Below the pieces are notes generated by a model. That model was not told the origin of the DNA. It saw nothing but the letters and a program-made list of their open reading frames with translations, and made no database searches. The position numbers and the translations under genes were made by a program. Of a stretch of DNA of 64,000 nt, positions 13,617-63,725 are shown one piece after another (the stretch's first letter is position 1; every line of letters begins with the position of its first letter). Source of the stretch: Macrostomum lignano (lineage: Eukaryota); the NCBI GenBank assembly GCA_002269645.1, contig NIVC01000104.1, forward strand, positions 496,001 to 560,000, given 5' to 3'.

Positions 13617-13721
13617 TGCTTTGATTGCGTTTTGATTTCATTGTTTCGTTGCAAGCCCTACCTTGATGGGCTTAGAGTGAGGCTACTTTTGTCCAGAGAA
13701 TTTTGCACTCTATCTGATCTC

Positions 13722-14470
13722 TTCGGGTACTGACGCCCTGTCTGATCCCACTGTGTGTACTGTCTGATCCCACTGTGTGTACTGTCTGATCCCACTGTGT
13801 GTACTGTCTGATCCCACTGTGTGTACTGTCTGATCCCACTGTGGGTACTGTCTGATCCCACTGTGGGTACTGTCTGATCCCACTGTGTGTACTGTCTGAT
13901 CCCACTGTGTGTACTGTCTGATCCCACTGTGTGTACTGTCTGATCCCACTGTGTGTACTGTCTGATCCCACTGTGGGTACTGTCTGATCCCACTGTGGGT
14001 ACTGTCTGATCCCACTGTGTGTACTGTCCGATCCCACTGTGTACTGTCTGATCCCACTGTGGGTACTGTCTGATCCCACTGTGTGTACTGTCTGATCCCA
14101 CTGTGGGTACTGTCTGATCCCACGGTGGGTACTGTCTGATCCCACTGTGGGTACTGTCTGATCCCACTGTGGGTACTGTCTGATCCCACTGTGTGTACTG
14201 TCTGATCCCACTGTGTACTGTCTGATCCCACTGTGGGTACTGTCTGATCCCACTGTGTGTACTGTCTGATCCCACTGTGTACTGTCTGATCCCACTGTGG
14301 GTACTGTCTGATCCCACTGTGTGTACTGTCTGATCCCACTGTGGGTACTGTCTGATCCCACTGTGTGTACTGTCTGATCCCACTGTGTGTACTGTCTGAT
14401 CCCACTGTGTGTACTGACGCCCTGTCTGATCCCACTGTGTGTACTGACGCCCTGTCTGATCCCACTATGT
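13722..14470. repeat. Minisatellite, 22-bp unit TACTGTCTGATCCCACTGTGTG, downstream of the SLC37A4 stop
   Basis: Directly visible tandem array. Confidence 0.95.
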
Positions 14471-15246
14471 GTACCAAAGCTCGCCATTGTTCATGCTATG
14501 CGTATTTCTATTTTGATCAAAAAAAAATTTTTTTTCTGCACTTTCTGTTCATTTTAGGTGCATTTTGTTTTAGTTGTCAATAGCTCTATTTTTAGCATGC
14601 TTCGATTGATCTCGTAGTAAATAGGTTTATTTAAATTTCATCTTAACTGAAAAGTTTTATATACTTGCTAATTATCTTGATGTTTCATTCGTTAATCAAG
14701 TCTTCCATGTTTGTTGCGATTTTTTACTTTTTGAGTTTAGTAATACTAATTATGTGTTAAGTAATGTTTTAGCTCTGTACTTTATTAGATTCTTTAAGAC
14801 TATCGCGGTAACTTAAAGATTTCAATGAGAGTGTCTGTCTATTTCTATTTTAGCTAGCCCTGCATATCTGTTGCATTTTTCACTTCCGGCAAATCGATCG
14901 TACTTGAAGTAGTTTTGAAAAGTACAAATAAATGAATAAACAAGTAACAACAGTTAAATATTTTAAATTACATTAAAAAACTTGTTGTTACGAGCGTTTT
15001 TTAATTAGTGAAACTAAAATTGTCTGCCTCACTGATGCATCTGGCTTTCAGATCGCACTGCTAATTGCAGCAGATTAATATGAATTATTATTAATATGAT
15101 AATTATTATTATGATTATTATTAATTATATGATGAATATAATAATTAGTATGATTAACATGGTTTTTCCAGCACATCTCTATTCTTCTACTTACTAAGAC
15201 AGCCAACAGTAGTGTAATAAGAACTTAACAACCAAATTAACAAAAG

Positions 15247-15687
15247 ATGCGTCTAACAGAATTGAAAGGCGACTTATTCGCTGGCTCGGAGTCGTCCGAC
15301 CCGCCGGCCGGTATGGCGCACTGCGTCAGCGCCGACCTGCGAATGGGCCGCGGCATCGCCGCCGAATTTCGATCGCGATTCGGTCGGATCGACGAATTCC
15401 GTCGGCAGACCTGCGGCATTGGCGAGGTGGCGCACCTGCGTCTGAGTGACGGCCGCTTGCTGGCCTGCCTAGTAACAAAACAGCGCTATTGGGAGAAGCC
15501 GACGTACGACAGTTTGACACAGTGCCTGCAGCGGCTGCGTCAGATCTGCTTAGACCAAGGCGTCAAACGTCTGGCGGTGCCGCGCCTCGGCTGCGGCTTG
15601 GACAGGCTCAACTGGCGTCGAGTCCGCGAACTCATTGAGGCCGTATTTGACGGTGCCGACGTTTGTGTTGATGTCTACTCACTGTGA
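15247..15687 (+). CDS. OARD1: ADP-ribose glycohydrolase OARD1/TARG1 (macrodomain), single coding exon, 146 aa
   Basis: KGDLF, AHCVSAD-RMG-GIA, GEVA, LVTK...KPTY, PRLGCGLDRL-W and terminal VYSL match TARG1; the catalytic Lys (TK) and Asp (GCGLD) equivalents are present. Confidence 0.95.
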   Translation: MRLTELKGDLFAGSESSDPPAGMAHCVSADLRMGRGIAAEFRSRFGRIDEFRRQTCGIGEVAHLRLSDGRLLACLVTKQRYWEKPTYDSLTQCLQRLRQICLDQGVKRLAVPRLGCGLDRLNWRRVRELIEAVFDGADVCVDVYSL

Positions 15688-15704
15688 CATTCCTGAATCC
15701 GCTG

Positions 15705-16330
15705 CATTTGTCACTCGTAGAATCGCCCCATTTACCACCCATAGAATCTCCCCATTTACCACCCATACAATCTCCCCATTTACCACCCATACAATCTCCC
15801 CATTTACCCCCCATACAATCTCCCCATTTACCACCTATAGAATCTCCCCATTTACCACCTATAGAATCGCCCCATTTACCACCTATAGAATCGCCCCATT
15901 TACCACCTATAGAATCGCCCCATTTACCACCTATAGAATCTCCCCATTTACCACCTATAGAATCGCCCCATTTACCACCTATAGAATCGCCCCATTTACC
16001 ACCTATAGAATCGCCCCATTTACCACCTATAGAATCGCCCCATTTACCACCTATAGAATCGCCCCATTTAGAACCAAAAGGATCGCCCCATTTACCACCT
16101 ATAGAATCGCCCTATTTGTCACTACACTAGTAGAATCGCCCCATTTACCACCTACAGAATCGCCCTATTTGTCACTACACTAGTAGAATCGCCCCATTTA
16201 CCACCTACAGAATCGCCCCATTTACCACCTACAGAATCGCCCTATTTGTCACTACACTAGTAGAATCGCCCCATTTACCACCTATAGAATCGCCCCATTT
16301 ACAACCAAAAGGATCGCCCCATTTACCATC
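15705..16330. repeat. Minisatellite, 24-bp unit TAGAATCGCCCCATTTACCACCTA, downstream of the OARD1 stop
   Basis: Directly visible tandem array. Confidence 0.95.
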
Positions 16331-17028: not shown

Positions 17029-17403
17029 CTACTGAGCAATCTGCTCAATCAACCAGTCTGGATTCGCGCAGAATGTGAACCGATTGTCAACTTTGGCGCC
17101 TTCGACTAAACGCGAATAGGCCAAACGAACGTTGCCAACTTCGTTGGAATTCTCGTAGAATTCGAAGTAGCTCGGCTCGATTTTAAACAGCACCATGGAA
17201 TCCGGCGGCGGAATCATCGAGTCTTTGTAGTGGCAAATCTTCTGGCGAAGGTCCTGGAATTTCTCTTTGAACTCGCTGTCGATTACTTTGCTTTGATTGT
17301 TGTCTATGGCGCTGAAGTAGCACTTTAGCTCGGATGGAAATATCTTCTGAAAGTAGCTGTTCACCACGTGGCGATCGCGAACCAGAGTGGCTTCGCCTTC
17401 CAC
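17029..17403 (-). CDS. PNPO: PNPO-like flavoprotein, terminal exon
   Basis: Acceptor CTCTCAG|GTG at 17404/17403 (phase 0, giving RYVM|VEG). VEG...YF...QSKVI...P-P...EFY...R...DWLIEQIAQ* matches the PNPO C-terminal half (VEG...YF...QSSVI...PKP...EFW...DR...DWLYERLAP*). Confidence 0.85.
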   Translation of the reverse strand: MEGEATLVRDRHVVNSYFQKIFPSELKCYFSAIDNNQSKVIDSEFKEKFQDLRQKICHYKDSMIPPPDSMVLFKIEPSYFEFYENSNEVGNVRLAYSRLVEGAKVDNRFTFCANPDWLIEQIAQ

Positions 17404-17714
17404 CTGAGAGGTTTTTTAGGAACGGATTTATATGTAGGTTAGCTGTCAGCCGAACTACGAGCGTATATACAATTCTTTAAAAAAACTGCAAACTGCAGCT
17501 CAAATGCTTGTTTGATGCTTTATAAAACCGTTTAATTAAAACGCTGTTCAACTTTACAATCGGAGCACGAAACTGGACGAAAGCCAGGCGCGAACACCGA
17601 CATGGGTTGGGGAGGGACGCGCGCAAGCGAACAAATTAACTCGGCCTAATCAGAACAAGGTGAGCTACATGTAAATCAACGCAAGAAGGCCTTAAAACCA
17701 GATTGGTGGAGGTT

Positions 17715-18082
17715 TGGTGCGCACGGGGCCAAAAAGACGCGGAGAGCTGGAGGGAGGTGGGTGCGCACCGGGCAGAAAGTTGCGGAGAGCTGGAGGGAGG
17801 TGGGTGCGCAGCGGGCAGAAAGACTAAGGCGCGGAGAGAGAGGGAGGTGGGTGCGCACCGGGCAGAAAGTTGCGGAGAGCTGGAGGGAGGTGGGTGCGCA
17901 CCGGGCAGAAAGACGCGGAGAGAGGGGGAGGTGGATGCTCAAGGGGCAGAAAGACGCGGAGAGGGAGGGAGGTGGGTGCTCACGGGGCAGATCAAGACTC
18001 GGAGAGGGAGGGAGGTGCATGCTCACGTGGCAAAAGGACGCGGAGAGGGATGGAGGTGGGTGCGCACAGAAAGACGCAGAGA
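17715..18082. repeat. GC-rich approximately 40-43-bp tandem repeat (resumes at 21290-21380)
   Basis: GGGTGCGCAC.GGGCAGAAAG..GCGGAGAG units on both sides of the foldback/LINE insertion. Confidence 0.85.
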
Positions 18083-18339
18083 GGGGGTCGCCATCATAAA
18101 TCCGAAACATTACAAACCCGAAATATCATAACTCCGAAAAACAAAATAGCAACGCCTATCAAAAACCCGAAATAATCATAAACCCGAAATATCATAACTC
18201 CGAAATTAATAGCAGGGCCCATCATAAACACGAAATGTCACAAACCCGAAAAATCACAACTCCGGAAACCAAAATAGCATTGCCCATCATAAACCAGAAG
18301 TATCACAAATCCGAAATCATAACTCCCGAAAACCAGTGA

Positions 18340-21009
18340 CTCCCGAAAATCGGAGCGCTGATCGGACCGAGGCTGCAGCAGAGCTGTCGCTGCATCTCCC
18401 TGTCTTCTCGGCTGCTTCGGGTCGACGTCCGGCTTCGCGGCCGGAACACCCGCCTGTTCTGCGCGTACGCGCCGCCTGCTACCCGCTCCGATGAGGCTCA
18501 GGCCTTCTTCGAGCAACTCTCGGTGCGGGTGGAGGAGATGGCGCAACGTGACACAGTGGTCATTCTCGGAGACCTGAACGCAGTTCTGCGTAGGTCCGAG
18601 CGATCGCTGTTTGTGACAGCGCGCGAGAACGGCAACACCGGAGCGCTAGAGGACTTCCTGGAGAGACAGGACATGGTGTCGGCCAACACCAGATTCCACA
18701 AGTCGCCGGGCAGGCTCGCGACCTTCGTGGGCTGCAAGCGGAGGCGGCGGAACGCGCGTGGCCGGAACGCTACGCGGAGGCTGGCACAGCTCGACCACGT
18801 GCTTGTGCGCTTTCGCGAGCGCCGCCGCGTCACCAACTGCTACACCATTACGCCGCTGGCTCTGCGGTCCGACCATCGGCTGCTCATCTGCGACCTTCGG
18901 CTTCGGGACCCGCTCTACCGTCCGCCAAAGCGGCCACCGCGGCGCTACTACCGCGCGCTCAGAGACGCCGAGACGCGACGTCGCTTTGCCGGTGCCTTTG
19001 TCACTGCGCTGGGCGACAAGCGTGGAGGAGCCGAGTACGCGGAGGTGAGCGCTGCAGTTCGAGCCGCTGCGGAGCAAGCAGTCCCGCTGATGCGACCGGC
19101 CCAGCGCGGGCAGCCGGTCTGGCAGGACGACCCCGCGATCGACGAAGCGAGGGAAGATCTGGAGAGGCTTCGTCTGAGTGGGCGGCCAACTCGCGAGGCG
19201 GAGGAGGCTCTGGCGGCTGTCTACCTGCAGCGGCAGCAGTCCGCTGTCGATGACGCCATCCAAGCCGTCTCTGCCGCAGGGCCCGATGCCAGAGGGCGCG
19301 TGGCCTGGTCCGCCATCAACACTCTGACGGGGCGAAAGCGGCGCATTGCGCTTAACCTGGCAGGCGACACTCCGGATGAGCGCAGGAACGAGCTGCGCGA
19401 GTTCTTCGCCGCCATTGTCAACGCGCCGCCCCCTCCGCTTCCAGAAAATCTGAGGCTGCCGCCGGAGACGCCGTTGCCGGCGGAGGAGAGCTTCAATGTT
19501 GCCCCAGTCAGCACAGCCGACGTTGTGAAGTTCGCTCGGCAGACGCCGGGCGGCAAAGCGCTTGGTCCGGACGAGGTGCCCACCGAGGCGCTGCGGATCC
19601 ACTGCGTGGCCACTGAGGTCGCCAGAGTGATGAACCGCGTGATTTTCGGTGAGGTGGCGCCAAACGAATGGACCACGGCGCACATCGTCGCCATTCCAAA
19701 GAAGCCGGGCACCACCAAGCTCGAGGAGCATCGAGGCATCTGCCTACAGTCCTGCGCCGCGAAGCTGTTCAACCGCATGCTGCTATCGCGGTTACAGCCT
19801 GTGCTGGACCCGTACCTGCGACCTGAGCAGAACGGATTCCGGCCCCATCGCGGCACAGTGACGCAGATCCTGGCTCTTCGACGAGTCATCGAGGAGGCGC
19901 GCATCCGCCAGTTGACCCTGATCCTGATCTTCGTCGATTTCAGGAAGGCTTTCGACTCGGTCGTGAGGGACGCGCTCCCAGAGGTGCTCCGTGCGTACAA
20001 CGTGCCAGAGCTGCTGATTTCTGCTGTCATGGCGCTGTACCACGGCACGACGGCTGCTGTCTCAACACCGGACGGCCTATCGGATTTCTTCGAGACATCC
20101 TCCGGGGTGCTCCAGGGAGATACGCTAGCGCCGTTCCTATTTATTCTGGTGCTTGACTGGGTGCTACGGACTGCTCTGCCTTCCAACGACGACGGCTTCC
20201 TGCTGCGGCGACGCGTGGGTCGACGCCAACCGGAGAGACGGCTCAGCGTGCTTGGCTACGCCGATGACCTCGCCCTGCTGTCCTCGACCGTCGAGGGCGC
20301 CCAACGACAGCTGGATAGGCTGGTTGCCGTTGCGGCGAGCGTCGGCCTGGTGGTCAACACGCAGAAGACCGTCGTGCTATGCGTGCCGGACGACACCGAG
20401 GCTGCAATCTTCTGCCGAGGCGCTGACGGACAGGCGAGTGAGCTTCCAAGATGTCAGCAGTTCGTCTACCTCGGCGGTCTGGTTCCCGACGTCCGCGAGG
20501 ATCTGCGGCGTCGCCGAGGACTTGCTTGGGCTGCCTTTCGTTCTATAAGGTCAGTCCTGCAGTCCGAGGCCCTACCGGACCGCCAGAGGGCGGCGCTGTT
20601 CCAGGCGGTGATCGAGACCGTCCTGTTATACAACGCCGAGACCTGGACGCTGACAGACTCGCTCGAGGCTCAAGTCGACGCGGCGCACGCTGGCCTGCTG
20701 CGCGCCGCCTTCAAGATCGGCAACGAGCGAGTCACCAACACGGCGCTCTATCATCGCGCCGGCCTGGCCCGTCCTAGCGATCTGCTGCGCCGTCGGCGAC
20801 TCCAGCTGGCAGGCCACGTCATCCACGCCGAGGCCTACTGTCCGGAGCCGGTGCAGGAGGTGCTGCTACTTACGTTGCAGGCACCCTACCGGCGGGGACA
20901 GGCGAGGACTCGGCGCTACGTCGACTGTCTGCTGGCTGACGCCGGCGCCCCGGACTCTGCCGGCGGTGCGGCTTTTGTTCGCGCCCAAGCTTTGAAGCGC
21001 GCCATCTGA
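18340..21009 (+). CDS. APE-RT polyprotein ORF of the RTE-type LINE (N-terminally truncated)
   Basis: Continuous open frame containing endonuclease and RT motifs (YADD at 20257-20268); supplied ORF 18523..21009 starts at an internal GTG. Confidence 0.9.
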   Translation, partial: LPKIGALIGPRLQQSCRCISLSSRLLRVDVRLRGRNTRLFCAYAPPATRSDEAQAFFEQLSVRVEEMAQRDTVVILGDLNAVLRRSERSLFVTARENGNTGALEDFLERQDMVSANTRFHKSPGRLATFVGCKRRRRNARGRNATRRLAQLDHVLVRFRERRRVTNCYTITPLALRSDHRLLICDLRLRDPLYRPPKRPPRRYYRALRDAETRRRFAGAFVTALGDKRGGAEYAEVSAAVRAAAEQAVPLMRPAQRGQPVWQDDPAIDEAREDLERLRLSGRPTREAEEALAAVYLQRQQSAVDDAIQAVSAAGPDARGRVAWSAINTLTGRKRRIALNLAGDTPDERRNELREFFAAIVNAPPPPLPENLRLPPETPLPAEESFNVAPVSTADVVKFARQTPGGKALGPDEVPTEALRIHCVATEVARVMNRVIFGEVAPNEWTTAHIVAIPKKPGTTKLEEHRGICLQSCAAKLFNRMLLSRLQPVLDPYLRPEQNGFRPHRGTVTQILALRRVIEEARIRQLTLILIFVDFRKAFDSVVRDALPEVLRAYNVPELLISAVMALYHGTTAAVSTPDGLSDFFETSSGVLQGDTLAPFLFILVLDWVLRTALPSNDDGFLLRRRVGRRQPERRLSVLGYADDLALLSSTVEGAQRQLDRLVAVAASVGLVVNTQKTVVLCVPDDTEAAIFCRGADGQASELPRCQQFVYLGGLVPDVREDLRRRRGLAWAAFRSIRSVLQSEALPDRQRAALFQAVIETVLLYNAETWTLTDSLEAQVDAAHAGLLRAAFKIGNERVTNTALYHRAGLARPSDLLRRRRLQLAGHVIHAEAYCPEPVQEVLLLTLQAPYRRGQARTRRYVDCLLADAGAPDSAGGAAFVRAQALKRAI

Positions 21010-21054
21010 CGCTGCTTTTGTGAACTGGCAGCGTACTCTGTTGTTGTTGTTGTT
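18352..21054 (+). mobile_element. 5'-truncated non-LTR retrotransposon of the RTE group (RTE/RTE-X-like), with (GTT)n tail
   Basis: Stop-free frame from 18340 to TGA at 21009: partial AP endonuclease (GALIGPRL...CAYAPP...ILGDLNA...LDHVL...SDH), then RT (IPKKPG...HRGICL...EQNGFR...FVDFRKAFDSV...GVLQGDTLAPFLF...YADD...YLG), then YNAETWTLT and RRRRLQLAGHV. The 3' end is a (GTT)5 tail. Candidate TSD GAAAACCA at 18328-18335 and 21055-21062. Confidence 0.93.
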
Positions 21055-21522
21055 GAAAACCAAAATAGTGTTGAACATTGCTAGAACTTTCGAAGTTATG
21101 ATATTTCGATTTGTGACATTTCGGGTTTATGATGGGCAATGCTATTTTTGTTTTCGGAGTTATATGATATTTCGGGTTTGTGATTTTTCGGGATTATGAT
21201 GTGCGTTGCTAGCAATTTCGGGTTTATGATGGGCGTTGCTATTTTGGTTTCTGGAGTTGTGATTTTTCTGGTTTGTGATGCCCCCCCCCGGAGAGGAAGT
21301 GTGCACGGGGCAGAAAGACGTGGAGAGGAGGGAGTGTGGGTCTGCACAGGGTAGAAAGACGAGGAGAGGGAGTGGCGTGACAGAAAAAGTACAAAAAGTG
21401 TACAAAGTTGACCAAGCAAGGGGGCTAGACGGTAACGGGGCGGTGCACCGAACCGGGCATTAAACCTCTGTAAACGTCACCCCAAAAGGGGCACGCTTCC
21501 GGATAATAGCCGACTTTCTCAC

Positions 21523-21834
21523 CATCACATAGCGATCCAGCTTCAGCCAATCAAAGTACAAGCTGACATTTTTGTTTTGAGAAATTTGATCACCCTTCCG
21601 GCTGGTCAGGGTGGATAAGAACAAAAATGCGTTGTCGCATACGTCGGCTAGCTGCATTGGTCGCTGCGATGGTCGAAGCGTCTTAGCGCACACGGTGGCC
21701 AATAGGAAAATGTCGGCGCTAGCGAATCGGCCGCTGCGAACTGCGTCCTTCTGCCAGCGGCGGAACAGGCTGAATGGCTGTGCAAAGCCGCGGGCAATCG
21801 CCTCCTTGGGATCTTTGATTGGCTTGGTCTGCGG
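21523..21834 (-). CDS. PNPO: Pyridoxamine 5'-phosphate oxidase-like flavoprotein, N-terminal coding exon (no in-frame ATG before the conserved region)
   Basis: Reads PQTKPIKDPKEAIARGFAQPFSLFRRWQKDAVRSGRFASADIFLLATVCAKTLRPSQRPMQLADVCDNAFLFLSTLTSRKGDQISQNKNVSLYFDWLKLDRYVM, aligning to PNPO (F..W..EAV...LAT...PSAR...SRKG.....N...SL.F.W). Donor ATG|GTGAGA at 21523/21522; acceptor TAG at 21837-21835 with TACTAAC about 24 nt upstream. Confidence 0.85.
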
Positions 21835-24800
21835 CTAATGCATTTAGAAATATTGAAGTTAGTAACCAGTAAGGACAATATTGGTTTGGATTAGTCTGAT
21901 AGTGAAGCACCTAACTCAAAAATTACCATACAATGGCGTATAAATTGAAGGATAAAAGGGTGTAAATAAATTTGTGTATTTTATAAAAAAATTTCTGACT
22001 ATGCTAGCAAATTTAATTAAAAATACTCATTTTAACTGCTTCAGTAGAAATTTATCCAAGTGCATATCTAATTTTCAAATGTTCTGATAAATATTTACAA
22101 AACAGTTTTTCAATCAACTTATCAACTTAATCAACTTCAGTTTGATTCATAGTATATACAGTGCACATATTTGTAAGACAGTAGACATGCAAATTATCAG
22201 TAAAAATCTAAAAATATGGTATGGAATGATACTTTAAATATTTACAAAAACTTTGTTACAAAGTCAAACGATATTTTTGCAAAACAAAAAAATAAAAAAC
22301 GTATCACTATCTTAAAACTACATTAAAATTACAATATAGTATATTTGAAACACTCATGTCAAAAAATGTTGTAAAAGCAAAAAAAATTTAATTTCATTGA
22401 TACTATTCAATCAAATAAGGTACTTTTCTTCTTAATTTAATGAAAAAAGCTATGTTCATATACTGCATTGTACATGCTAAAAATTCAAAAGTCTAAGTTT
22501 TAAACTAATCTGTGTAAAAAATTCCTTTAGAAATAAATATATAACTCCACAATTTTAAAACAGCAAAAAATTGACACCTTTGTATGCTCTAAAACTGCCA
22601 CTTAAAAATAAGTACGCCTTCTATAGCCGCGCTTGATCCAAAAATATACAGTATATGGGTACAATTCTGTAGATGAAAAAACTGCAGTTGATTGTGTTTT
22701 ATTGCTTAAGAGAATTTTATTGTAATTTTTAGTTTAAAGTTTTAAACGAAATTACCTAGTTTAAAAAATTCGAACATATTTAGCGCTGCATAAATGAGTT
22801 CACTTACCATTTTATTTTATTAGTAGGGAAAATGTTGTTTGATAAATTTTAACTCTATATTTGCAAATTATCGAATAATATGTGCTCATTTTATCTGCGC
22901 GATAAAAGACAGTAAATTTTAAACATGATATAAAGTACAGGTTTTATGATTTTACATTTCAAAATAGTAATTTATCATTAAAAATGAAATAAAATTTTAA
23001 AATACCAACACAAATGCAAGTTTTTTTTGCTGTTGTAAATATTTCTATTCAATTTGTTTATTTTTGTCACTATGATAGTTCCGGAAGCTATTTTATAAAT
23101 ACTACAGTACACCCGGTGCCCCAAAAACTATTGTTGCCATATCGAGAGAAAACGAGAGCAATTGCTAAGAGTTTGAGATAAAATCTCTAATATTAAAGCA
23201 TTTCAAGTCAAAAGAAAGGTCAATAGCACAAAGTAATGCCAGAGAATATAAAAAAAGTTTCTATTAAATATCCATGCCTGAAGAATGACAGTCTTCTGGA
23301 AGTACTTTCAAAGAATTATTTTATGGTTTTTAATATGCTTTCGGACTTAGAAGCTAAAAAGTTAAACGGAATCGTGCAAAGTATCTTGTTTTACAGGTAT
23401 TTATAGTCGTAACTTAATAACATGATGATTTAGGTCGGAAAGTTAGTACTTTAACAAATTGTTTTTTGTTCTTTTTCTATACATTGACTACAATTTATAT
23501 AATTTTTAACAAACACTCATGTTTTTTCTTTAAAGAGATTTAAAAACCATAAAAATTATATCGTTTATTTAACAGTTATCGCCTTTAAATTTTCTTAATT
23601 TCACGCGGGCCTTGACGTGACCCGCCAGTACAATATTTAAAGACCATTGATGTACAGTGCCTTGTTTTTTATTTGTACTTTGTTTAATGTTTGTTTACTT
23701 TTAGCTGCTGTTATTTTGAACTTTTCATTGACAATTGGAAGCACTTTTTGCTCGCTTTAGCAATTTTTTCATTATTTGGAAGTTGACACAGTGATGCTCA
23801 CTGCCATTTTTAGGCTTAGCAGTTCTATTGAATGTGCATTTGATTCCCTTTCTTATTTTCGATCGCTCTTTTGTCATAGAACATATATTATTTTATAATC
23901 TATGCGCTTCTTACAGCAGCAAATTTTATACTGAATCATACTATATTTGTCTTATATTAATATTTAGCCATATATACTAATTTTATATAAAATATACATT
24001 CTATATGTCATAACTCATACTAAGCTTACATCAAATGCGAATCATAGCCCTTCTTATATTTATGCCACTTATATCAAGGAAATATATCAAACCATTATTT
24101 ATGCAAACTGCAGTACTATACTAGAGATCATTGATTATATAGGATAGGCCCTATGGCTATGCTATGCTAGAGATTTCTAACAAAAATTTATGTTTTTTGG
24201 TTGTTGGAAATATGAAATAGAAGTTGGCTTGATATCTCTACTGGCATATAATATTGGCCACAAGAAGTCATAAAAATCTTAGAATATATTTTAATAAAAT
24301 TTTGATGTATTGTTTTTCATTCTGGTATATATTTTATATGATCTCTTTACTAAGTATGGTTGCAAATGTAAAGGATTGAAAGACATTTTAAAATAATAAA
24401 TGCAATTTATACTTGTTTTAAAAACAAGTCATAATATATTCAACTACCAGGTAGATAAGAAGCTTCTTTTTAATTTTGATCTATACCTGTTAGTGTTAGG
24501 AAATATTTGTCTCCTAACTATGTCAACTGGCATATGAAAAAACAAAAAAGATATGAAAATAATTACTGATTATTAACAAAAAGTACAATTGATAGTTTTT
24601 AAATATTTATAGCAAGAACTATGTCATTTGTGCCAACTATGCAAAATTAACAGTTAAGGACAAATGAATTAATATGCTAACTGGCATAGTTGTGGCGCAG
24701 TTAGTAGAATTGCAAATATTGCTAAGGCAATTATTTCCTACCAAGTAGTTAGATTGGTATCCACACTTTTTGGTGCCTATTCTTTTTAGTACATGGTATC

Positions 24801-25377
24801 TCAGTATCCCAGTTTGCTTTATCGGCCCTAATTATAAATAAAAAATAGATGTCAAAATAAGAAAGTAGCCCAAGCCTAATCTAAAAAATAAAAGTTTGTC
24901 AGTACTTTTACTTCAAATAGCCAAAATATTATTCATTTTGTTAAGCTGATGTGCTTTTTATTTTGAAAAGTCTGTCATTTCAATGAAATGAAATTAAGTC
25001 TAAAAAAGTTTTTTATTTTATATAAGTGTGTTTATATATTTTTTTCCTTTTTACTTCTTTTTGTGGCAACATAGGGCCAGAGTTAAAATTTAATGAATTT
25101 AAATTTAGGTCATCAAATACCACATGAGTTAATTCAGTGGTTAAAGCATGTTTTTTATTATACAACTGATAGTGTATAGTTAAGCTAATTGAATTAAATC
25201 AAAAGAGAGATTTTCCAAGAGTAAGAAGTTCAGCAGTGTGACAAAATGAATGAACAATGCTTTCATTAGGTAAAGAGAAGTGTTGTAGCAAATTTATTAC
25301 ATTATTATACAATTACTTTTTGTATTTATAAGTCATATATGAACATTTACATGAACTATGGCACTGAAAAGCAAACT

Positions 25378-26456
25378 AGGATATTCTTCAAGGTGGAATT
25401 TTCTGTTAGCCCTTTATAGACAAAAGTTTCTGAACACAACAATCAATATTCATATTTTTGATTTTTACAAGTATTATAGATGTTTTATATGTTATGTTGT
25501 TTATGTTGTTTATGTTGTTTTATATGTTTTATGTTTTCTAAATTAAATTATAAATATAAATTATATAAAACATATATATAAACAATATACAAAACATATT
25601 GCCTAGTTATTTGACTAGCCTAAACTCAAAGAAACTTGGCATTTTGCACTATTTTTAAAGCAAATCCTATAAAAATGCCAGGTACCAAAAAGCAGAAACC
25701 CTGTGATTAGTATGTTGTTCTTTTGCTTTTTCCTGTTGCTAAGAATTTGAAGTCTTCATTTTGATATAATAGAATAAAATCACATTAAATTTTAATTATC
25801 TTATTAAGAGTTAGTAAACATATAATGTGTTGTTTATTTAATGAATTTTGGTATTCAAGTGTCCAATATGTATAAAGTATTTGATTAATTGTGTATTGTA
25901 GCATTTTTTATTATGCCAGTACATTAGCCATCCTGAAAGAAGTCCATAGGCCTATACTTTTTGTTTAAGAATCTACTAATATTATTTTTTAACAAATAAA
26001 CTTTGCTACTATGGTAACTTGTGAACCTGTATACACACTTGCTTGTAATAAAAGAGTAGCTAATTAAAATAACAACTTCTAAATATATTACTAGTATAAT
26101 ACAGTGATACCTAGTTTTTTAGCTATAGTTACAAATTGATTATAGGCAATATACTTGCTATGGAAAAATTGTGCAACTTGACTTTAATTATAGAGCATCA
26201 ATTAAAGACTGAATGTTTTTACTACTATGGTTAACTCAATTTTTGTAGGATTTGCTTTATAAATTGTGCTAAATGACAAGTTTCTTTAGGTTTAGGCTAG
26301 TCAAATGACTAGGCAATGTTTTTTATTGATCAATATATAAATACATTTAGTACTTGTATAAACCACAAAAATGAATATTGATTGTTGTGTTTAGCAGCTT
26401 TTTTTTCTACAGGAGGGCTGACAAAAAAGTCCACTTTTGGGAATACAAATTTTAAA
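25378..26456. repeat. Long degenerate inverted repeat (arms about 25378-25677 and 26240-26456), probable old MITE/foldback
   Basis: For example TTGCCTAGTTATTTGACTAGCCTAAAC and AACACAACAATCAATATTCAT in the left arm recur as reverse complements at about 26288-26318 and 26360-26392. Confidence 0.75.
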
Positions 26457-27959
26457 TTTGTTGATTGCAATTGTACTTGCCTTTTGACCTTTGTCACCTA
26501 AGCATTTTCCACTTAAACTTTTGGCCACCCTGGCCCCTTTTTGCTTTTGCATTATAGCAACCTAATAGCTTTGCCAATCGTTTTTAGAAAGATAAAAGCT
26601 TTTTTTCATAGCCCAGTCTTGCACCTAGGCAGGAGCCTCTTTGGATTTTTAAAATCGTTCGTTTGGAAGCCAATCATAGCTCTTTTTTTTCAGCTTTGCA
26701 TGAATTTAAGTAATTCCCATTTAGCTTACTACTCTTAGTAGCCCATATCATTTGTAAATGTGTCTTTTTATATCTAGATATTGTTGCTACATTCTTTTAG
26801 ATGAGATGTCTATATGGTTCGTGTGTTTAGCTATCAACAATAGCCTTTGGTTGTGGATTTATTGACTTAATATTTTATGACACATGCATTTATTTGCAGC
26901 CAATGGTAGTTATTACAAACAATTTTTCTGCAAAAGTTATTCATAGATAGTTTTAGTTTTCTTTATTTATTGTTCAACATTTTGTTCGTGTTTCTATCTA
27001 TCTGATTAAATGATTTGACTAGCTGAGTGAGAGCAGTTGGTTTAGAGTCTGGATTCTACCTTTTAAATCGGGTTGGCCAACTTATAATTATGGCCGATAA
27101 AAGCTTTCAAAAGTTGGTCTATATTTCCTTTTTGTTGCGTTTTTATTGGCTGAGGCCCAGTTCTTCTTCCCTCCTTGCCAACCAGCCAGCATCTCCCAAC
27201 TTCCCCGCAAACCCCAAGCCCTGATTTCCAATAAAAGCACGTCCTTCCTACTGCCTTTTTCTTTGGTGCAGTCTGCCGCCATTTTTCTTTCTCTAGTCCG
27301 CGTCCTATACATAAATGTGATTAGAGCATACACAGTACAAGCAGGCAGTGACAAGATCTGGCAGCTGGCAAGCGGTGTCCACTGATTAATAGTGTTAAAG
27401 CAAAGAAAGAATAGAAACGCGTTCGGCTTTACAGGTCATCTTCTACATCTAGCCAACTGGGTAAAAAGAATGCGATTTTTATCTATCTTTATCTGTTACT
27501 AATACTTTTGTCTTGTACAAATTTTCAACTGTCAAACAGTCTTAAAAGTATAGAATAGTTGCGGGCTTTAGTGTCGATTTAATCTAGAATAGTGTGTAGA
27601 GTATCAAAATTTGTTCCTGTGCGCAGCTAACGGGGTAAAAACTTAATGGTAGTCTAATTAACTAATTAACAGCAATTATTTTGTTGTCATGTTATTTATA
27701 TGGCTCGTCTATTTGTCTAAATATCAATTTGTTTGTTAAAAGCTCTGAAAGCTTTCAGAGAAATCATTTAGCCTACCGCACATTCCATGACTTGATTTTC
27801 CAGCAGCACCTTCAGCCAAGTAGGCTTACCAAAAAACTGCTGTGCAACCAGTCGAATGACTCAACCCATCTCGATCCTACAGTTTTGTATAACGACAATC
27901 TTACACTGGAAAACAGATTGTCCAAACTTTTCCAGCCTGTGCGGACTGTTAAGCAAGCC

Positions 27960-36930: not shown

Positions 36931-37413
<483 letters not shown>

Positions 37414-38477
37414 TGAAAGTTGCAAAAGAAAAAAGGCGCGGCACTTGTAGCAGAAGCAGATCATTTCGCAAGCAGAAAATTTCACGCTTCGCCAAGTTTC
37501 TTCAACTCGAATTTCTCGAACCAACTCGCCGTTCATATGTGCTCTGATTGATCACGCCGCCCCGACGGAATTCTGGGGGTTTGGGGATTTTTTCTGAGTT
37601 TGTTTCCCACCCGAGATCCAAGTTTGCCCAAGGGGTCAGTTGGTTGGGGCACGCAAGCACAAGCTGCCAAGTGGAACAGACTTAAGGATTTTTCGAGTTT
37701 TTTTCCAAACTAAAACTTCGAAGGCGCGGGTAGTTGGCGAGAGAAAGTCGTGAGTTAGTGGGGGAAGCCTTGGGTCGAATATAAAACCAGTTGTGTAGAA
37801 GGAAGCTGAGATCGGAATTGAACATCGAAACTCACTTGAGACTTATAAAAGTCAAGTATATCATCGCAAAGCCGATTTTTAGCCTAATCTATATACTGAT
37901 GAGTGAGTTCTCTACTGCTCAAGGCATAGATTGAGACTGCTCTAGACCGCCGGGTTTTAAAGTTTACAGCCACGCATAATATTGACTGATTCCACCTGGT
38001 TAAAGTGGCTGAGCATTCCCCGCGGGTTTGGGATCTCTACGAACTTATATTCAATATCTATAGGATAGGAAGGGGAAGGGCTTTGATGAAGGACATCGTT
38101 CGAAGGAATCCCGAACCAAGTGTGCCGCTTCACTGTAAAAAATCAATGAGACCTTGGCGATGCTGTGTCTGCGTGTTTTTTCTTCTCTCTTCTCTCCTCT
38201 CTTGGTCTTCACTCTTCACATGGGAAAGTTCGTTTCTCCCAATGCTTAGTTGATCGAACTGGAGTTGGCGTTGTTGTTGCTGTGCTCTGTGCAATCTCGG
38301 CTCAGTTTATTATATGGTGAGTCCATTTTTTCTTCGATTCAGACTTGCTCGAGTGCCACTTCACTTGTCTAGAGCATTGTACAGCTTGTGTGTGTCACTG
38401 CCCGCTTGTTGTGACAGCCATCTGCTGTTGTGCTTATCGGAAATTCTGTGTCTCTAAGATGCTTAAAACTCCATATT

Positions 38478-61475: not shown

Positions 61476-61911
61476 ATGAAGGGAACGGACACATCGAATT
61501 GGACCAGAGTGCCGCGGTACCGCAGTGTGAAGAGTGCATGAATAGAACAGAAGAACGTGAATATTCAAGCGGGCAGAGTTGGCGCAGCAGAGATAAATCA
61601 GTGTCTGGGCTGGACCAGTCGAGCATAAAATGACTGAGAATTTGATTGCAGCAGTGCTAAGAATCGAGTCAATCTTTGGCTGCATGCACTTCAAGTGGCT
61701 GAGAGGGAAAAGCAATCCCATCTTAGAAAGGAGTGTGAGAAGCTGGATAAGGTACTCGAAAGTATTGTCGAGAAAGATCTTGACCTCGCCTCCGCTTTCA
61801 ATTTTTTGTAGCGAGACTCAAGTCTTTTTAAGTTTTGTTCTTTCAATCAAATTTCACTTTAGCACTGTTAGACTTTTCTAAGAATAAGAAAATATTTTTC
61901 TTTTTTAGCAA

Positions 61912-63130
61912 TGGTTGTCCAGAGTGGTGCCAGTTTAAGTGTCCGGAGTGGCGCCAGTTGGGGTGTCCGGAGTGGCGCCAGTTGGGGTGTCCGGAGTGGC
62001 GCCAGTTGGGGTGTCCAGAGTGGTGCCAGTTTAAGTGTCCGGAGTGGCGCCAGTTGGGGTGTCCGGAGTGGCGCCAGTTGGGGTGTCCGGAGTGGCGCCA
62101 GTTGGGGTGTCCGGAGTGGCGCCAGTTGGGGTGTCCGGAGTGGCGCCAGTTTGGGTGTCCGGAGTGGCGCCAGTTTGGGTGTCCAAAGTGGCGCCTGTTT
62201 GGGTGTCCGGAGTGGCGCCAGTTTGGGTGTCCGGAGTGGCGCTAGTTTGGGTGTCCGGAGTGGCGCCAGTTTGGGTGTCCGGAGTGGCGCCAGTTGGGGT
62301 GTCTGGAGTGGCGCCAGTTGGGGTGTCCGGAGTGGCGCCAGTTTGGGTGTCCGGAGTGGCGCCAGTTTGGGTGTCCGGAGTGGCGCTAGTTGGGGTGTCC
62401 GGAGTGGTGCCAGTTTGGGTGTCCGGAGTGGCGCCAGTTTGGGTGTCTGTATGGCGCTAGTTTGGATGTCCGGAGTGGCGCCAGTTGGGGTGTCCGGAGT
62501 GGCGCCAGTTGGGGTGTCTGGAGTGGCGCCAGTTGGGGTGTCCGGAGTGGGTGTCCGGAGTGGCGCCAGTTTGGGTGTCCGGAGTGGCGCTAGTTGGGGT
62601 GTCCGGAGTGGCGCCAGTTTGGGTGTCCGGAGTGGCGCCAGTTTGGGTGTCCGGAGTGGCGCCAGTTTGGGTGTCCGGAGTGGCGCCTGTTTGGGTGTCC
62701 GGAGTGGCGCCAGTTGGGGTGTCCGGAGTGGCACCAGTTTGGGTGTCCGGAGTAGCGCCTGTTTGGGTGTCCGGAGTGGCGCCTGTTTGGGTGTCCGGAG
62801 TGGCGCTAGTTGGGGTGTCCGGAGTGACGCCAGTTTGGGTGTCCGGAGTGGCGCCAGTTTGGGTGTCCGGAGTGGCGCCAGTTGGGGTGTCCGGAGTGGC
62901 GCCAGTTGGGGTGTCCGGAGTGGCGCCAGTTTGGGTGTCCGGAGTGGCGCCAGTTGGGGTGTCCGGAGTGGCGCCAGTTTGGGTGTCCGGAGTGGCGCCA
63001 GTTTGGGTGTCCGGAGTGGCGCCAGTTTGGGTGTCCAAAGTGGCGCCTGTTTGGGTGTCCGGAGTGGCGCCAGTTGGGGTGTCCGGATTGGCGCCAGTTG
63101 GGGTGTCCGTATGGCGCCAGTTGGGGTGTC
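61912..63130. repeat. Minisatellite, 24-bp unit GTGTCCGGAGTGGCGCCAGTTTGG
   Basis: Directly visible; ends about 30 bp before the Ig exon acceptor. Confidence 0.95.
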
Positions 63131-63161
63131 ACAAGATTGCTTTTCAATTGCATCTCCGCAG

Positions 63162-63313
63162 CAGCACCAGCCAGAATTCCCGGCGCCCACCAGTGCGGCC
63201 ACCCGGGCTACCGGCAGATCTGCTTTGAGGAAGGCGTCAAGTCCAAGCTGGTGTTCGCGGAGCTCGGGACCGCGGTGATTCGATGCGTTGTTAGAAATCT
63301 TGGCCGACACGTG
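63162..63313 (+). CDS. DPR/ZIG-8-like Ig protein, exon with the start of the first Ig domain
   Basis: Acceptor CTCCGCAG|CAG (phase 1, NAGNAG); APARIPGAHQCGHPGYRQICFEEGVKSKLVFAELGTAVIRCVVRNLGRHV resembles the DPR motif xLGxTAxLxCxVxNLGxxx|VSW; donor GTG|GTGAGT. The gene continues beyond the window. Confidence 0.72.
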
Positions 63314-63364
63314 GTGAGTAGGTCTGAGATAGATTTCGGATAGAGTAGAGATAGATTCTGGGTC

Positions 63365-63725
63365 TATGTGGGATACACATGGGATAGAGAATAGGATAGA
63401 CATGGGATAGAGAATGGAATAGACATGGGATAGAGAATGGGATAGACATGGGATAGAGAGTGGGATAGACATGGGATAGAGAATAGGATAAACATGGGAT
63501 AGAGAATAGGATAGACATGGGATAGAGAATGGGATAAACATAGGATAGACATGGGATAGAGAATGGGATGGACATAGGATAGACATGTGATAGACATGGG
63601 ATAAGACATGGGATAAAGAGTGGGATAAGAAATGGGATAGAGAGTGCGATTGACATGGGATAGAGAATATGGGATAGAGAATGGGATAGACATTGGATAG
63701 ACATAGGATAGAGAATGGGATAGAC
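63365..63725. repeat. Minisatellite, approximately 24-bp unit GATAGACATGGGATAGAGAATGG
   Basis: Directly visible. Confidence 0.9.

Follow-up and report, generated by a model that had tools for sequence, protein, structure and literature searches.

A PNPO-like gene of the flatworm Macrostomum lignano that probably takes its start codon from the spliced leader

In this study, we analyzed a stretch of 64,000 nucleotides of the Macrostomum lignano genome (hereafter the window; NCBI GenBank assembly GCA_002269645.1, contig NIVC01000104.1, positions 496,001 to 560,000 of the forward strand), whose minus strand carries a gene for a PNPO-like protein with a candidate splice acceptor, and no start codon, in front of its first codon. 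Very probably, this gene obtains its initiator AUG from the spliced leader (SL) that is added to mRNAs by trans-splicing. An initial annotation, made from the sequence alone, had proposed this explanation, and it is well supported here: the SL of M. lignano ends in ATG, and all four paralogous lineages of the gene lack a genomic start codon and have an AG before codon 1. The genomic hallmarks of genes that use an SL AUG are present, namely an SL ending in ATG, an acceptor directly 5′ of the open reading frame (ORF) in frame 0, and no in-frame AUG upstream of essential codons. We infer from sequence comparison both the addition of the SL at position 21834 of this copy and the use of its AUG as initiator.

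The window matches contig NIVC01000104.1 of the Mlig_3_7 assembly with 100% identity over 20,782 bp (contig coordinate = window coordinate + 496000), and a protein search with the PNPO-like product returned exclusively M. lignano proteins. The flatworm origin on which the initial annotation had made its proposal depend is thus borne out by the identity with this contig. M. lignano has a single SL of 35 nt, CGGTCTCTTACTGCGAAGACTCAATTTATTGCATG (PMC8629364), whose sole ATG is formed by its last three bases, and 30-39% of its genes receive this SL (PMC8629364, PMC5730564). The more general premise, that flatworm SLs end in AUG, therefore holds for this species, which does trans-splice. In an analysis of Macrostomum genomes, the terminal ATG of the SL was named the likely translation start codon (PMC10468722). 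The full 35-nt SL had no match in the window with up to 3 mismatches, and SL RNA genes are expected elsewhere; Rfam scans of the acceptor region and of the whole window also gave no match.

The PNPO-like gene, named BOX15_Mlig009110g2 and flagged as partial in GenBank, has two exons on the minus strand (21834-21523 and 17403-17029; Table 1). Its ORF comprises 228 genomic codons, or 229 amino acids when a Met is added. An in-frame TAG (21837-21835) directly 5′ of the first codon, CCG, closes the ORF, and the first 177 nt of exon 1 contain no ATG in any of the frames. As the initial annotation had described, no in-frame ATG occurs until the conserved strand, where codon 60 is the first, and the in-frame ATG just upstream of the ORF (21843-21841) is unusable, being followed by CAT TAG. 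At 21835/21834 (a slash marks the splice junction here and below), three features coincide above chance: the ORF is closed, GC content falls (59% in exon 1 versus approximately 25-33% upstream) and homology to paralogs sets in. A literature search for this gene (Mlig009110 and related IDs) found no gene-specific report.

The encoded protein was recognized by the Pfam PNPOx_N domain (PF01243; 47.9 bits, cut-off 28.1) and matched human PNPO (1nrg, E=3e-16), with query residues 19-228 aligned to human residues 56-260. In alignments with canonical PNPOs, its N-terminus falls where their conserved core begins, and therefore no extra coding exon is needed. Canonical motifs are replaced in all four lineages (RxxLLK by RPMQLAD, SRPK.SQ by QKIFPSELK, W.G by SMVLF and RLHDR by VGNVR). 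The Lys of RxxLLK and the Arg and His of RLHDR, whose substrate and flavin mononucleotide (FMN) roles come from E. coli and human structures, are lost throughout the family. To judge from these residues, the product should best be called PNPO-like, not PNPO, and the automatic UniProt name, pyridoxal 5′-phosphate synthase, may be wrong for the family.

We compared 13 loci from the same M. lignano genome, which fall into four paralogous PNPO-like lineages. Lineage 1 contains the window gene and its sister copies L006 and L007 (DNA identity 95-99%). Lineage 2 (P0002/P0157; loci L001 and L009-L013) is intronless and 75% identical to the window protein, whereas lineages 3 (P0003; L002-L004) and 4 (P0008; L008) are 58% and 41% identical to it, respectively. 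A genomic start codon is missing in every lineage, and an AG immediately precedes codon 1 in 12 of the 13 loci. The single exception, L001, has CTG/CCG where its five sister copies have CAG/CCG. We considered this locus as a counter-example, or as a retrocopy that carries the SL, and rejected both possibilities, since the state of the five sisters marks it as a copy that has mutated and that received its annotation through mapping.

Between lineages, nucleotide similarity starts exactly at codon 1 and the upstream sequences cannot be aligned. Over the 60 codons preceding the first genomic in-frame ATG, the ratio of nonsynonymous to synonymous divergence (dN/dS) was 0.19, 0.25 and 0.44 in three pairwise comparisons, with dS of 0.66-1.4; this ATG-less stretch has therefore long been translated. 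The predicted dependence on trans-splicing for a start codon is old, as it is common to four lineages with saturated synonymous divergence. Within lineage 1, the sister-copy protein is identical to the window protein, and the coding sequence (CDS) of L006 differs by only 2 synonymous changes.

Other features of the family were also observed. Intron positions differ: the window gene has a phase 0 intron after RYVM (21523/17403), lineage 3 has a phase 2 intron nine codons later after VAIVR (L002 8339/9341), and lineage 2 has none. These sequences suggest independent gain or loss, and the family possibly derives from an intronless ancestor. In lineage 2 (L001, L009-L013), the sequence upstream of the acceptor, approximately 400 nt upstream of the CDS, consists of an 18-nt pyrimidine-rich satellite, (CCGCACCCGCTTCACCCT)n, with a unit similar to the first coding bases (CCGCACAC...); in L001 this satellite sequence stays open in the reading frame for 180 codons. 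CTG replaces the CAG acceptor of sister copies at L001 7998-8000 and at approximately 14702-14704 of L006, in a copy of an MFS gene, and in both cases the annotated CDS start is unchanged. Copies with a broken acceptor thus keep their CDS start, and therefore annotated 5′ ends have been transferred by mapping; such copies may be decaying duplicates or assembly errors.

In the proposed mechanism, transcription would start somewhere in the AT-rich upstream region, and the 5′ part of the pre-mRNA would form an outron. The spliceosome would join the 35-nt SL to the TAG acceptor at 21835/21834, and the mature mRNA would begin ...CAAUUUAUUGCAUG/CCGCAGACC..., with the SL AUG in frame 0 with the ORF and the first AUG met by a scanning ribosome. 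The predicted product is a protein of 229 residues, M-PQTKPIKDPKEAIARGF...IEQIAQ. If trans-splicing failed, the first in-frame AUG would be codon 60, and the N-terminal quarter of the PNPOx fold would be lost.

Around the acceptor, the minus strand reads ...ggtTACTAACttcaatatttctaaATGcatTAG/CCG CAG/ACC AAG CCA ATC..., with the first codons at 21834-21832 (CCG), 21831-21829 (CAG) and 21828-21826 (ACC). The initial annotation had placed TACTAAC (21864-21858) about 24 nt before the acceptor and both AGs in phase 0 with the PNPO-like frame; its coordinates are exact, and the phase was confirmed on the minus strand. Its description of a strong acceptor was an overstatement, because TACTAAC is found at chance frequency (5 occurrences in the window, 6.3 expected) and the TAG falls outside the [T/C]TNCAG motif. 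In M. lignano, this motif is enriched at trans-splice acceptors and found at 44% of SL sites. No AG occurs between TACTAAC and the TAG at 21837-21835, which is thus the first AG downstream, and the tract ending in this TAG is 100% conserved in L006 and L007.

Annotation of the paralogs provides further evidence. In the Mlig_3_7 pipeline, the SL was trimmed from reads and de novo transcripts, which were then mapped, with the resulting peaks setting 5′ ends and TransDecoder calling ORFs (PMC5730564). After such trimming, an in-frame SL site would show as a 5′-partial CDS whose first base directly follows an AG and whose frame continues open upstream. The GenBank CDSs of lineages 2, 3 and 4 are indeed flagged as partial and start at the first base after AG, and in L002-L004 the frame is open for 11 further codons upstream of the annotated CDS start. 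The partial labels of the gene and its relatives would thereby be explained, the SL having been trimmed along with its ATG, and many M. lignano gene models probably need their N-terminal Met restored.

The predicted product, M followed by PQTKPIK...IEQIAQ (229 aa), is identical to UniRef100_A0A1I8HWK6, and the protein predicted by the initial annotation is therefore present in UniProt. We tried this Met as proof of SL addition and rejected it, as the accession series is not uniformly M-prefixed: the lineage 3 protein of the series has no M, and the lineage 4 protein starts two codons inside the acceptor. The M of A0A1I8HWK6 must therefore sit on genomic bases. It could reflect an SL transcript aligned to genomic TGCAT[TA]G at the acceptor or to ATTGTATG/GT at -92, or a real cis-spliced exon.

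Several points weigh against SL addition at 21834. The TAG acceptor does not fit the motif of M. lignano SL sites, and the SL sequence places T at -3 of its AUG, a poor Kozak context. In addition, the GenBank CDSs of lineage 1 itself start inside exon 1, by 24 nt (g2: window and L006) or 15 nt (g1: L007), and therefore no annotated SL peak exists at 21834; the g2 start lies 2 nt past another AG (AAAG/AT), at which an added SL would not be in frame. A plausible explanation for the missing footprint is that RNA sequencing (RNA-seq) reads were mapped end-to-end, that SL-containing reads stayed unmapped, that the transcript fell short of the acceptor, and that the boundary tool cuts without extending. 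Finally, two upstream ATG/GT sites could supply the same Met by cis-splicing.

This last possibility is the alternative that survives best, although it is an unlikely one: a short non-coding first exon whose last three bases are ATG would be spliced to TAG/CCG through a 92-nt or 973-nt intron, giving the same protein without the SL. Such a route could also coexist with trans-splicing. Our scan for phase-0 exons running from ATG to GT covered 21835-27680 of the minus strand, a 5.8-kb upstream region in which only two candidates had decent donors, at 21929-21927 and 22810-22808. The initial annotation had found no convincing phase-0 upstream exon in 21900-27400. This holds for longer coding exons, as the longest ATG-to-GT phase-0 candidate has 30 codons and a poor donor and no GC-rich island was found in the search; the two ATG/GT micro-exon sites had been missed. 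A TATAAAA lies approximately 55 nt upstream of the near ATG, and cis-splicing is expected to be favored when an outron contains a donor, as known from outron experiments in C. elegans. Among the older UniProt models, moreover, just this lineage has an N-terminal M, and P0003 and P0008 do not, which would fit a genome-encoded ATG present only here.

Other observations argue against cis-splicing. At the near site the sister copy L006 reads TATATTAAT, having lost both ATG and GT while its CDS is intact, and the near donor, GTAATT, is without the +5 G of the M. lignano GT[G/A]AG consensus. The far candidate is kept in L006 and L007, where the region is 96-98% identical and hence uninformative. No ATGGT is found within 2 kb upstream in L001-L004, yet these loci are also without a start codon. 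The RNA-seq-based GenBank models of all three lineage 1 copies are 5′-partial with no upstream exon, whereas STAR/StringTie should detect a cis junction. By our own estimate, ATGGTA occurs by chance within 300 nt in approximately 10% of cases in 26%-GC sequence. The UniProt M could also be explained by an SL-bearing transcript that was aligned to SL-like genomic strings.

The near candidate resembles the 3′ half of the SL (TCAATTT-ATACGCC-ATTGTATG/GTAA against TCAATTTATTGCATG/GTAAG, with a 7-nt insertion). We considered this string (21950-21921) as a degenerate SL RNA gene or an SL-derived exon and rejected it: two further sites in the window match just as well by alignment score, the region has no fold of the SL RNA type (z-score 0.04), and L006 has neither ATG nor GT. 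We regard the SL-like string 92 nt upstream as a probable chance match. Compared with an SL RNA gene, which should have the full SL exon, a donor, a three-hairpin fold and an Sm site, only the 3′ half matches, and no Rfam match was obtained. Another SL-like match was observed on the plus strand at 38298-38321, where CTCAGTTTATTATATG/GTGAGT agrees with the SL 3′ end and donor (CTCAATTTATTGCATG/GTAAG) at 17 of 21 positions, upstream of low-complexity repeats; it may represent a cis-spliced first exon with a terminal ATG, or a chance match.

Trans-splicing of the SL to a different AG is less probable still. The site could be CAG/ACC (21829/21828), in frame and yielding M-TKPIK, or AAAG/AT (21813/21812), out of frame and unproductive or regulatory. 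The tandem AGs lie 6 nt apart, each in phase 0, and CAG usually outperforms TAG as an acceptor; the g2 CDS in GenBank also begins as expected of a transcript from 21812. However, no AG precedes the annotated start of g1, which makes these 5′ ends look like the limit of read coverage and not like an SL site, and an out-of-frame SL AUG would leave the conserved N-terminus untranslatable, contrary to the dN/dS values. We favor 21835/21834 as the SL junction, with CAG/ACC as a possible minor site, because TAG comes first after the candidate branch point, CCG is the conserved first codon in three lineages that share the preceding acceptor, and the second AG is lineage-specific, being part of a Gln codon here where paralogs have CAC (His) or TGC (Cys).

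It is highly improbable that no Met is supplied at all, that is, that the gene is a non-functional or untranslated duplicate or starts at codon 60 or at a non-AUG codon: despite the 2.7-kb antisense long interspersed nuclear element (LINE) in the intron of the window copy that sister copies lack, the many recent duplicates in this genome, some with broken signals (the CTG acceptors of L001 and of the L006 MFS gene), and the loss of canonical PNPO catalytic residues in the family, the ORF is unbroken, neither cis splice site is damaged, the sister copies encode exactly this protein, purifying selection acts on the first 60 codons across lineages, and initiation at codon 60 would cost the protein the segment that aligns with human PNPO residues 56 to approximately 97.

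Table 1. Features of the PNPO-like gene, its paralogs and neighboring loci (window coordinates unless a locus is named)
Feature	Position	Strand	Details
Coding exon 1	21523..21834	-	312 nt, 104 codons, PQTKPIK...RYVM; donor ATG/GTGAGA
Intron	17404..21522	-	4119 nt, GTGAGA...CTCTCAG; holds satellite repeats and LINE insertion
Coding exon 2	17029..17403	-	VEGEATLV...IEQIAQ; stop TAG 17031-17029
First usable in-frame genomic ATG	21655..21657	-	Codon 60, within RPMQLAD; aligns with RMLLLKG strand of human PNPO
Dead in-frame ATG (ATG CAT TAG)	21841..21843	-	Sequence reading
A/T-rich tract ending in TAG acceptor	21835..21857	-	AG at 21836-21835; TAG doubles as ORF-closing stop
TACTAAC, candidate branch point	21858..21864	-	Branch A 21859, 24 nt before G of first AG
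Second in-frame AG (CAG/ACC), alternative acceptor	21829..21831	-	Would yield M-TKPIK...
TATAAAA, possible core promoter (weak: AT-rich surroundings)	21979..21985	-	Approximately 145 nt upstream of acceptor; sequence reading
Near candidate, TCAATTTATACGCCATTGTATG/GTAATT	21921..21950	-	ATG 21929-21927; 92 nt upstream of acceptor
Far candidate, ATG/GTAAGT, strong donor	22802..22810	-	ATG 22810-22808; 973 nt upstream of acceptor
Acceptor cattAG/CCG (TAG/CCG)			Lineage 1: window, L006, L007
Acceptor ctccgcAG/CCG (CCGCAG/CCG)			Lineage 2: L009-L013
Acceptor cttccAG/CCG (TTCCAG/CCG)			Lineage 3: L002-L004
Acceptor tacttcAG/GCC (CTTCAG/GCC)			Lineage 4: L008
Non-LTR retrotransposon, antisense in PNPO-like intron	18336..21054	+	2.7 kb; 828-aa reverse transcriptase ORF 18523-21009, RVT_1 E=6e-29; (TTG)n 3′ tail
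MFS transporter CDS start after caatttcag/ (TTTCAG/)	12249	+	Frame 0 with SL ATG, frame checked
487-aa gene CDS start after ttccagcag/ (CAGCAG/)	27807	+	Frame 0 with SL ATG, frame checked
Y_phosphatase CDS start after CTTCAG/	L008 8534		Frame checked; 76 codons open before first Met
Tectonic-like gene CDS start after TTTAG/	L013 19894	-	Frame 0 as read from first base
715-aa gene CDS start after GAAG/	L011 6000	-	Frame 0 as read from first base

The same annotation footprint was detected in neighboring genes (Table 1). In a small sample of approximately 10 neighbors, about half have a non-ATG CDS that abuts an AG in frame 0. At the 14 loci examined, all such CDSs, namely those of the four PNPO-like lineages and of five neighbors, are in frame 0 as read from their first base. 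We tentatively raise the possibility, which we hold to be somewhat less than even, that the SL AUG is the default rather than an occasional initiator of trans-spliced M. lignano genes, because approximately half of the unrelated neighboring genes sampled show this pattern, well above the one-third expected by chance and the 28% reported for Schistosoma mansoni. If this were true generally, thousands of partial CDSs in GenBank would be complete proteins, and the SL would serve as a shared start-codon cassette, with selection keeping the frame. The PNPO-like gene is not operon-internal: with a same-strand upstream gene at a repeat-adjusted distance of <1 kb as the threshold (PMC8629364), its upstream neighbor is divergent and 5.8 kb away. 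The 5.8 kb between the gene and the CDS at 27807 have a GC content of 20-36% and contain no long ORF.

The retrotransposon in the PNPO-like intron is found in the window copy only and is missing from L006 and L007. An 8-bp overlap at its junction suggests a target-site duplication, and the insertion is recent. Blocks of short tandem or satellite repeats (13658-14487, 15635-16183, 17676-18131 and 21096-21419) produce long spurious ORFs in several frames, also within this intron. On the plus strand, 15247-15687 holds an intact 146-aa macro-domain ORF with an ATG start (Pfam Macro, E=2.5e-6), which is annotated in L006 and was not among the genes called here. UniProt A0A1I8H8B0 and A0A1I8H9F5 (253 aa) have an alternative C-terminus that corresponds to the antisense strand of this ORF, at 15644-15566, and is probably an artefact of merged gene models. 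We also identified a 572-aa ORF with ALTTAQ repeats on the minus strand at 61868-63586 (PF20080, E=1.7e-14), a 140-aa ORF with a partial RRM_1 match on the plus strand at 36994-37416, and blocks of strong GC/AT skew at 38-44 kb and 56-60 kb of the window.

Initiation at an SL AUG was established in Schistosoma in 2006, and the present gene would be a further example that leaves knowledge of the mechanism unchanged. It offers a concrete, checkable case in a flatworm capable of transgenesis, in which a conserved protein would depend on trans-splicing. As the work of Cheng et al. (2006) is presented in PMC9851317 and PMC12582326, 28% of trans-spliced S. mansoni transcripts have the SL AUG in frame, and >40 cDNAs depend on it. 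As far as these accounts describe them, the SL-AUG mRNAs of S. mansoni (Cheng, Cohen, Ndegwa & Davis 2006, J Biol Chem 281:733) share with the PNPO-like gene an SL ending in AUG, an in-frame acceptor at the start of the ORF and the absence of a genomic start. In contrast to S. mansoni as described there, M. lignano is a free-living macrostomorph with a different, 35-nt SL, the evidence here consists of genome comparison and annotation footprints instead of cDNA and translation assays, and a whole paralogous family has the predicted dependence.

Compared with canonical PNPO (human 1nrg; E. coli PdxH 1g76), the M. lignano protein has the split-barrel PNPOx_N domain and the S-R-K-G motif in common, whereas its N-terminus is very short and the Lys of RxxLLK is replaced. 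A start codon donated by the SL is likewise the defining feature of slORFs (slORFfinder, PMC9851317), which standard annotation misses or calls partial. The slORF work dealt with nematodes, Oikopleura and trypanosomes and mostly with near-cognate NUG codons, unlike the AUG of M. lignano. A further comparison is with the annotated SL genes of M. lignano itself (Wudarski et al. 2017, PMC5730564; Ustyantsev & Berezikov 2021, PMC8629364), from two studies that contain no analysis of the SL AUG as a start codon. They concern the same genome and the same SL, and the CDSs of paralogs and neighbors of the PNPO-like gene begin right after the AG in the same way; in contrast to those SL genes, the lineage 1 copies have no GenBank 5′ end at the acceptor, and their acceptor is TAG rather than [T/C]TNCAG.

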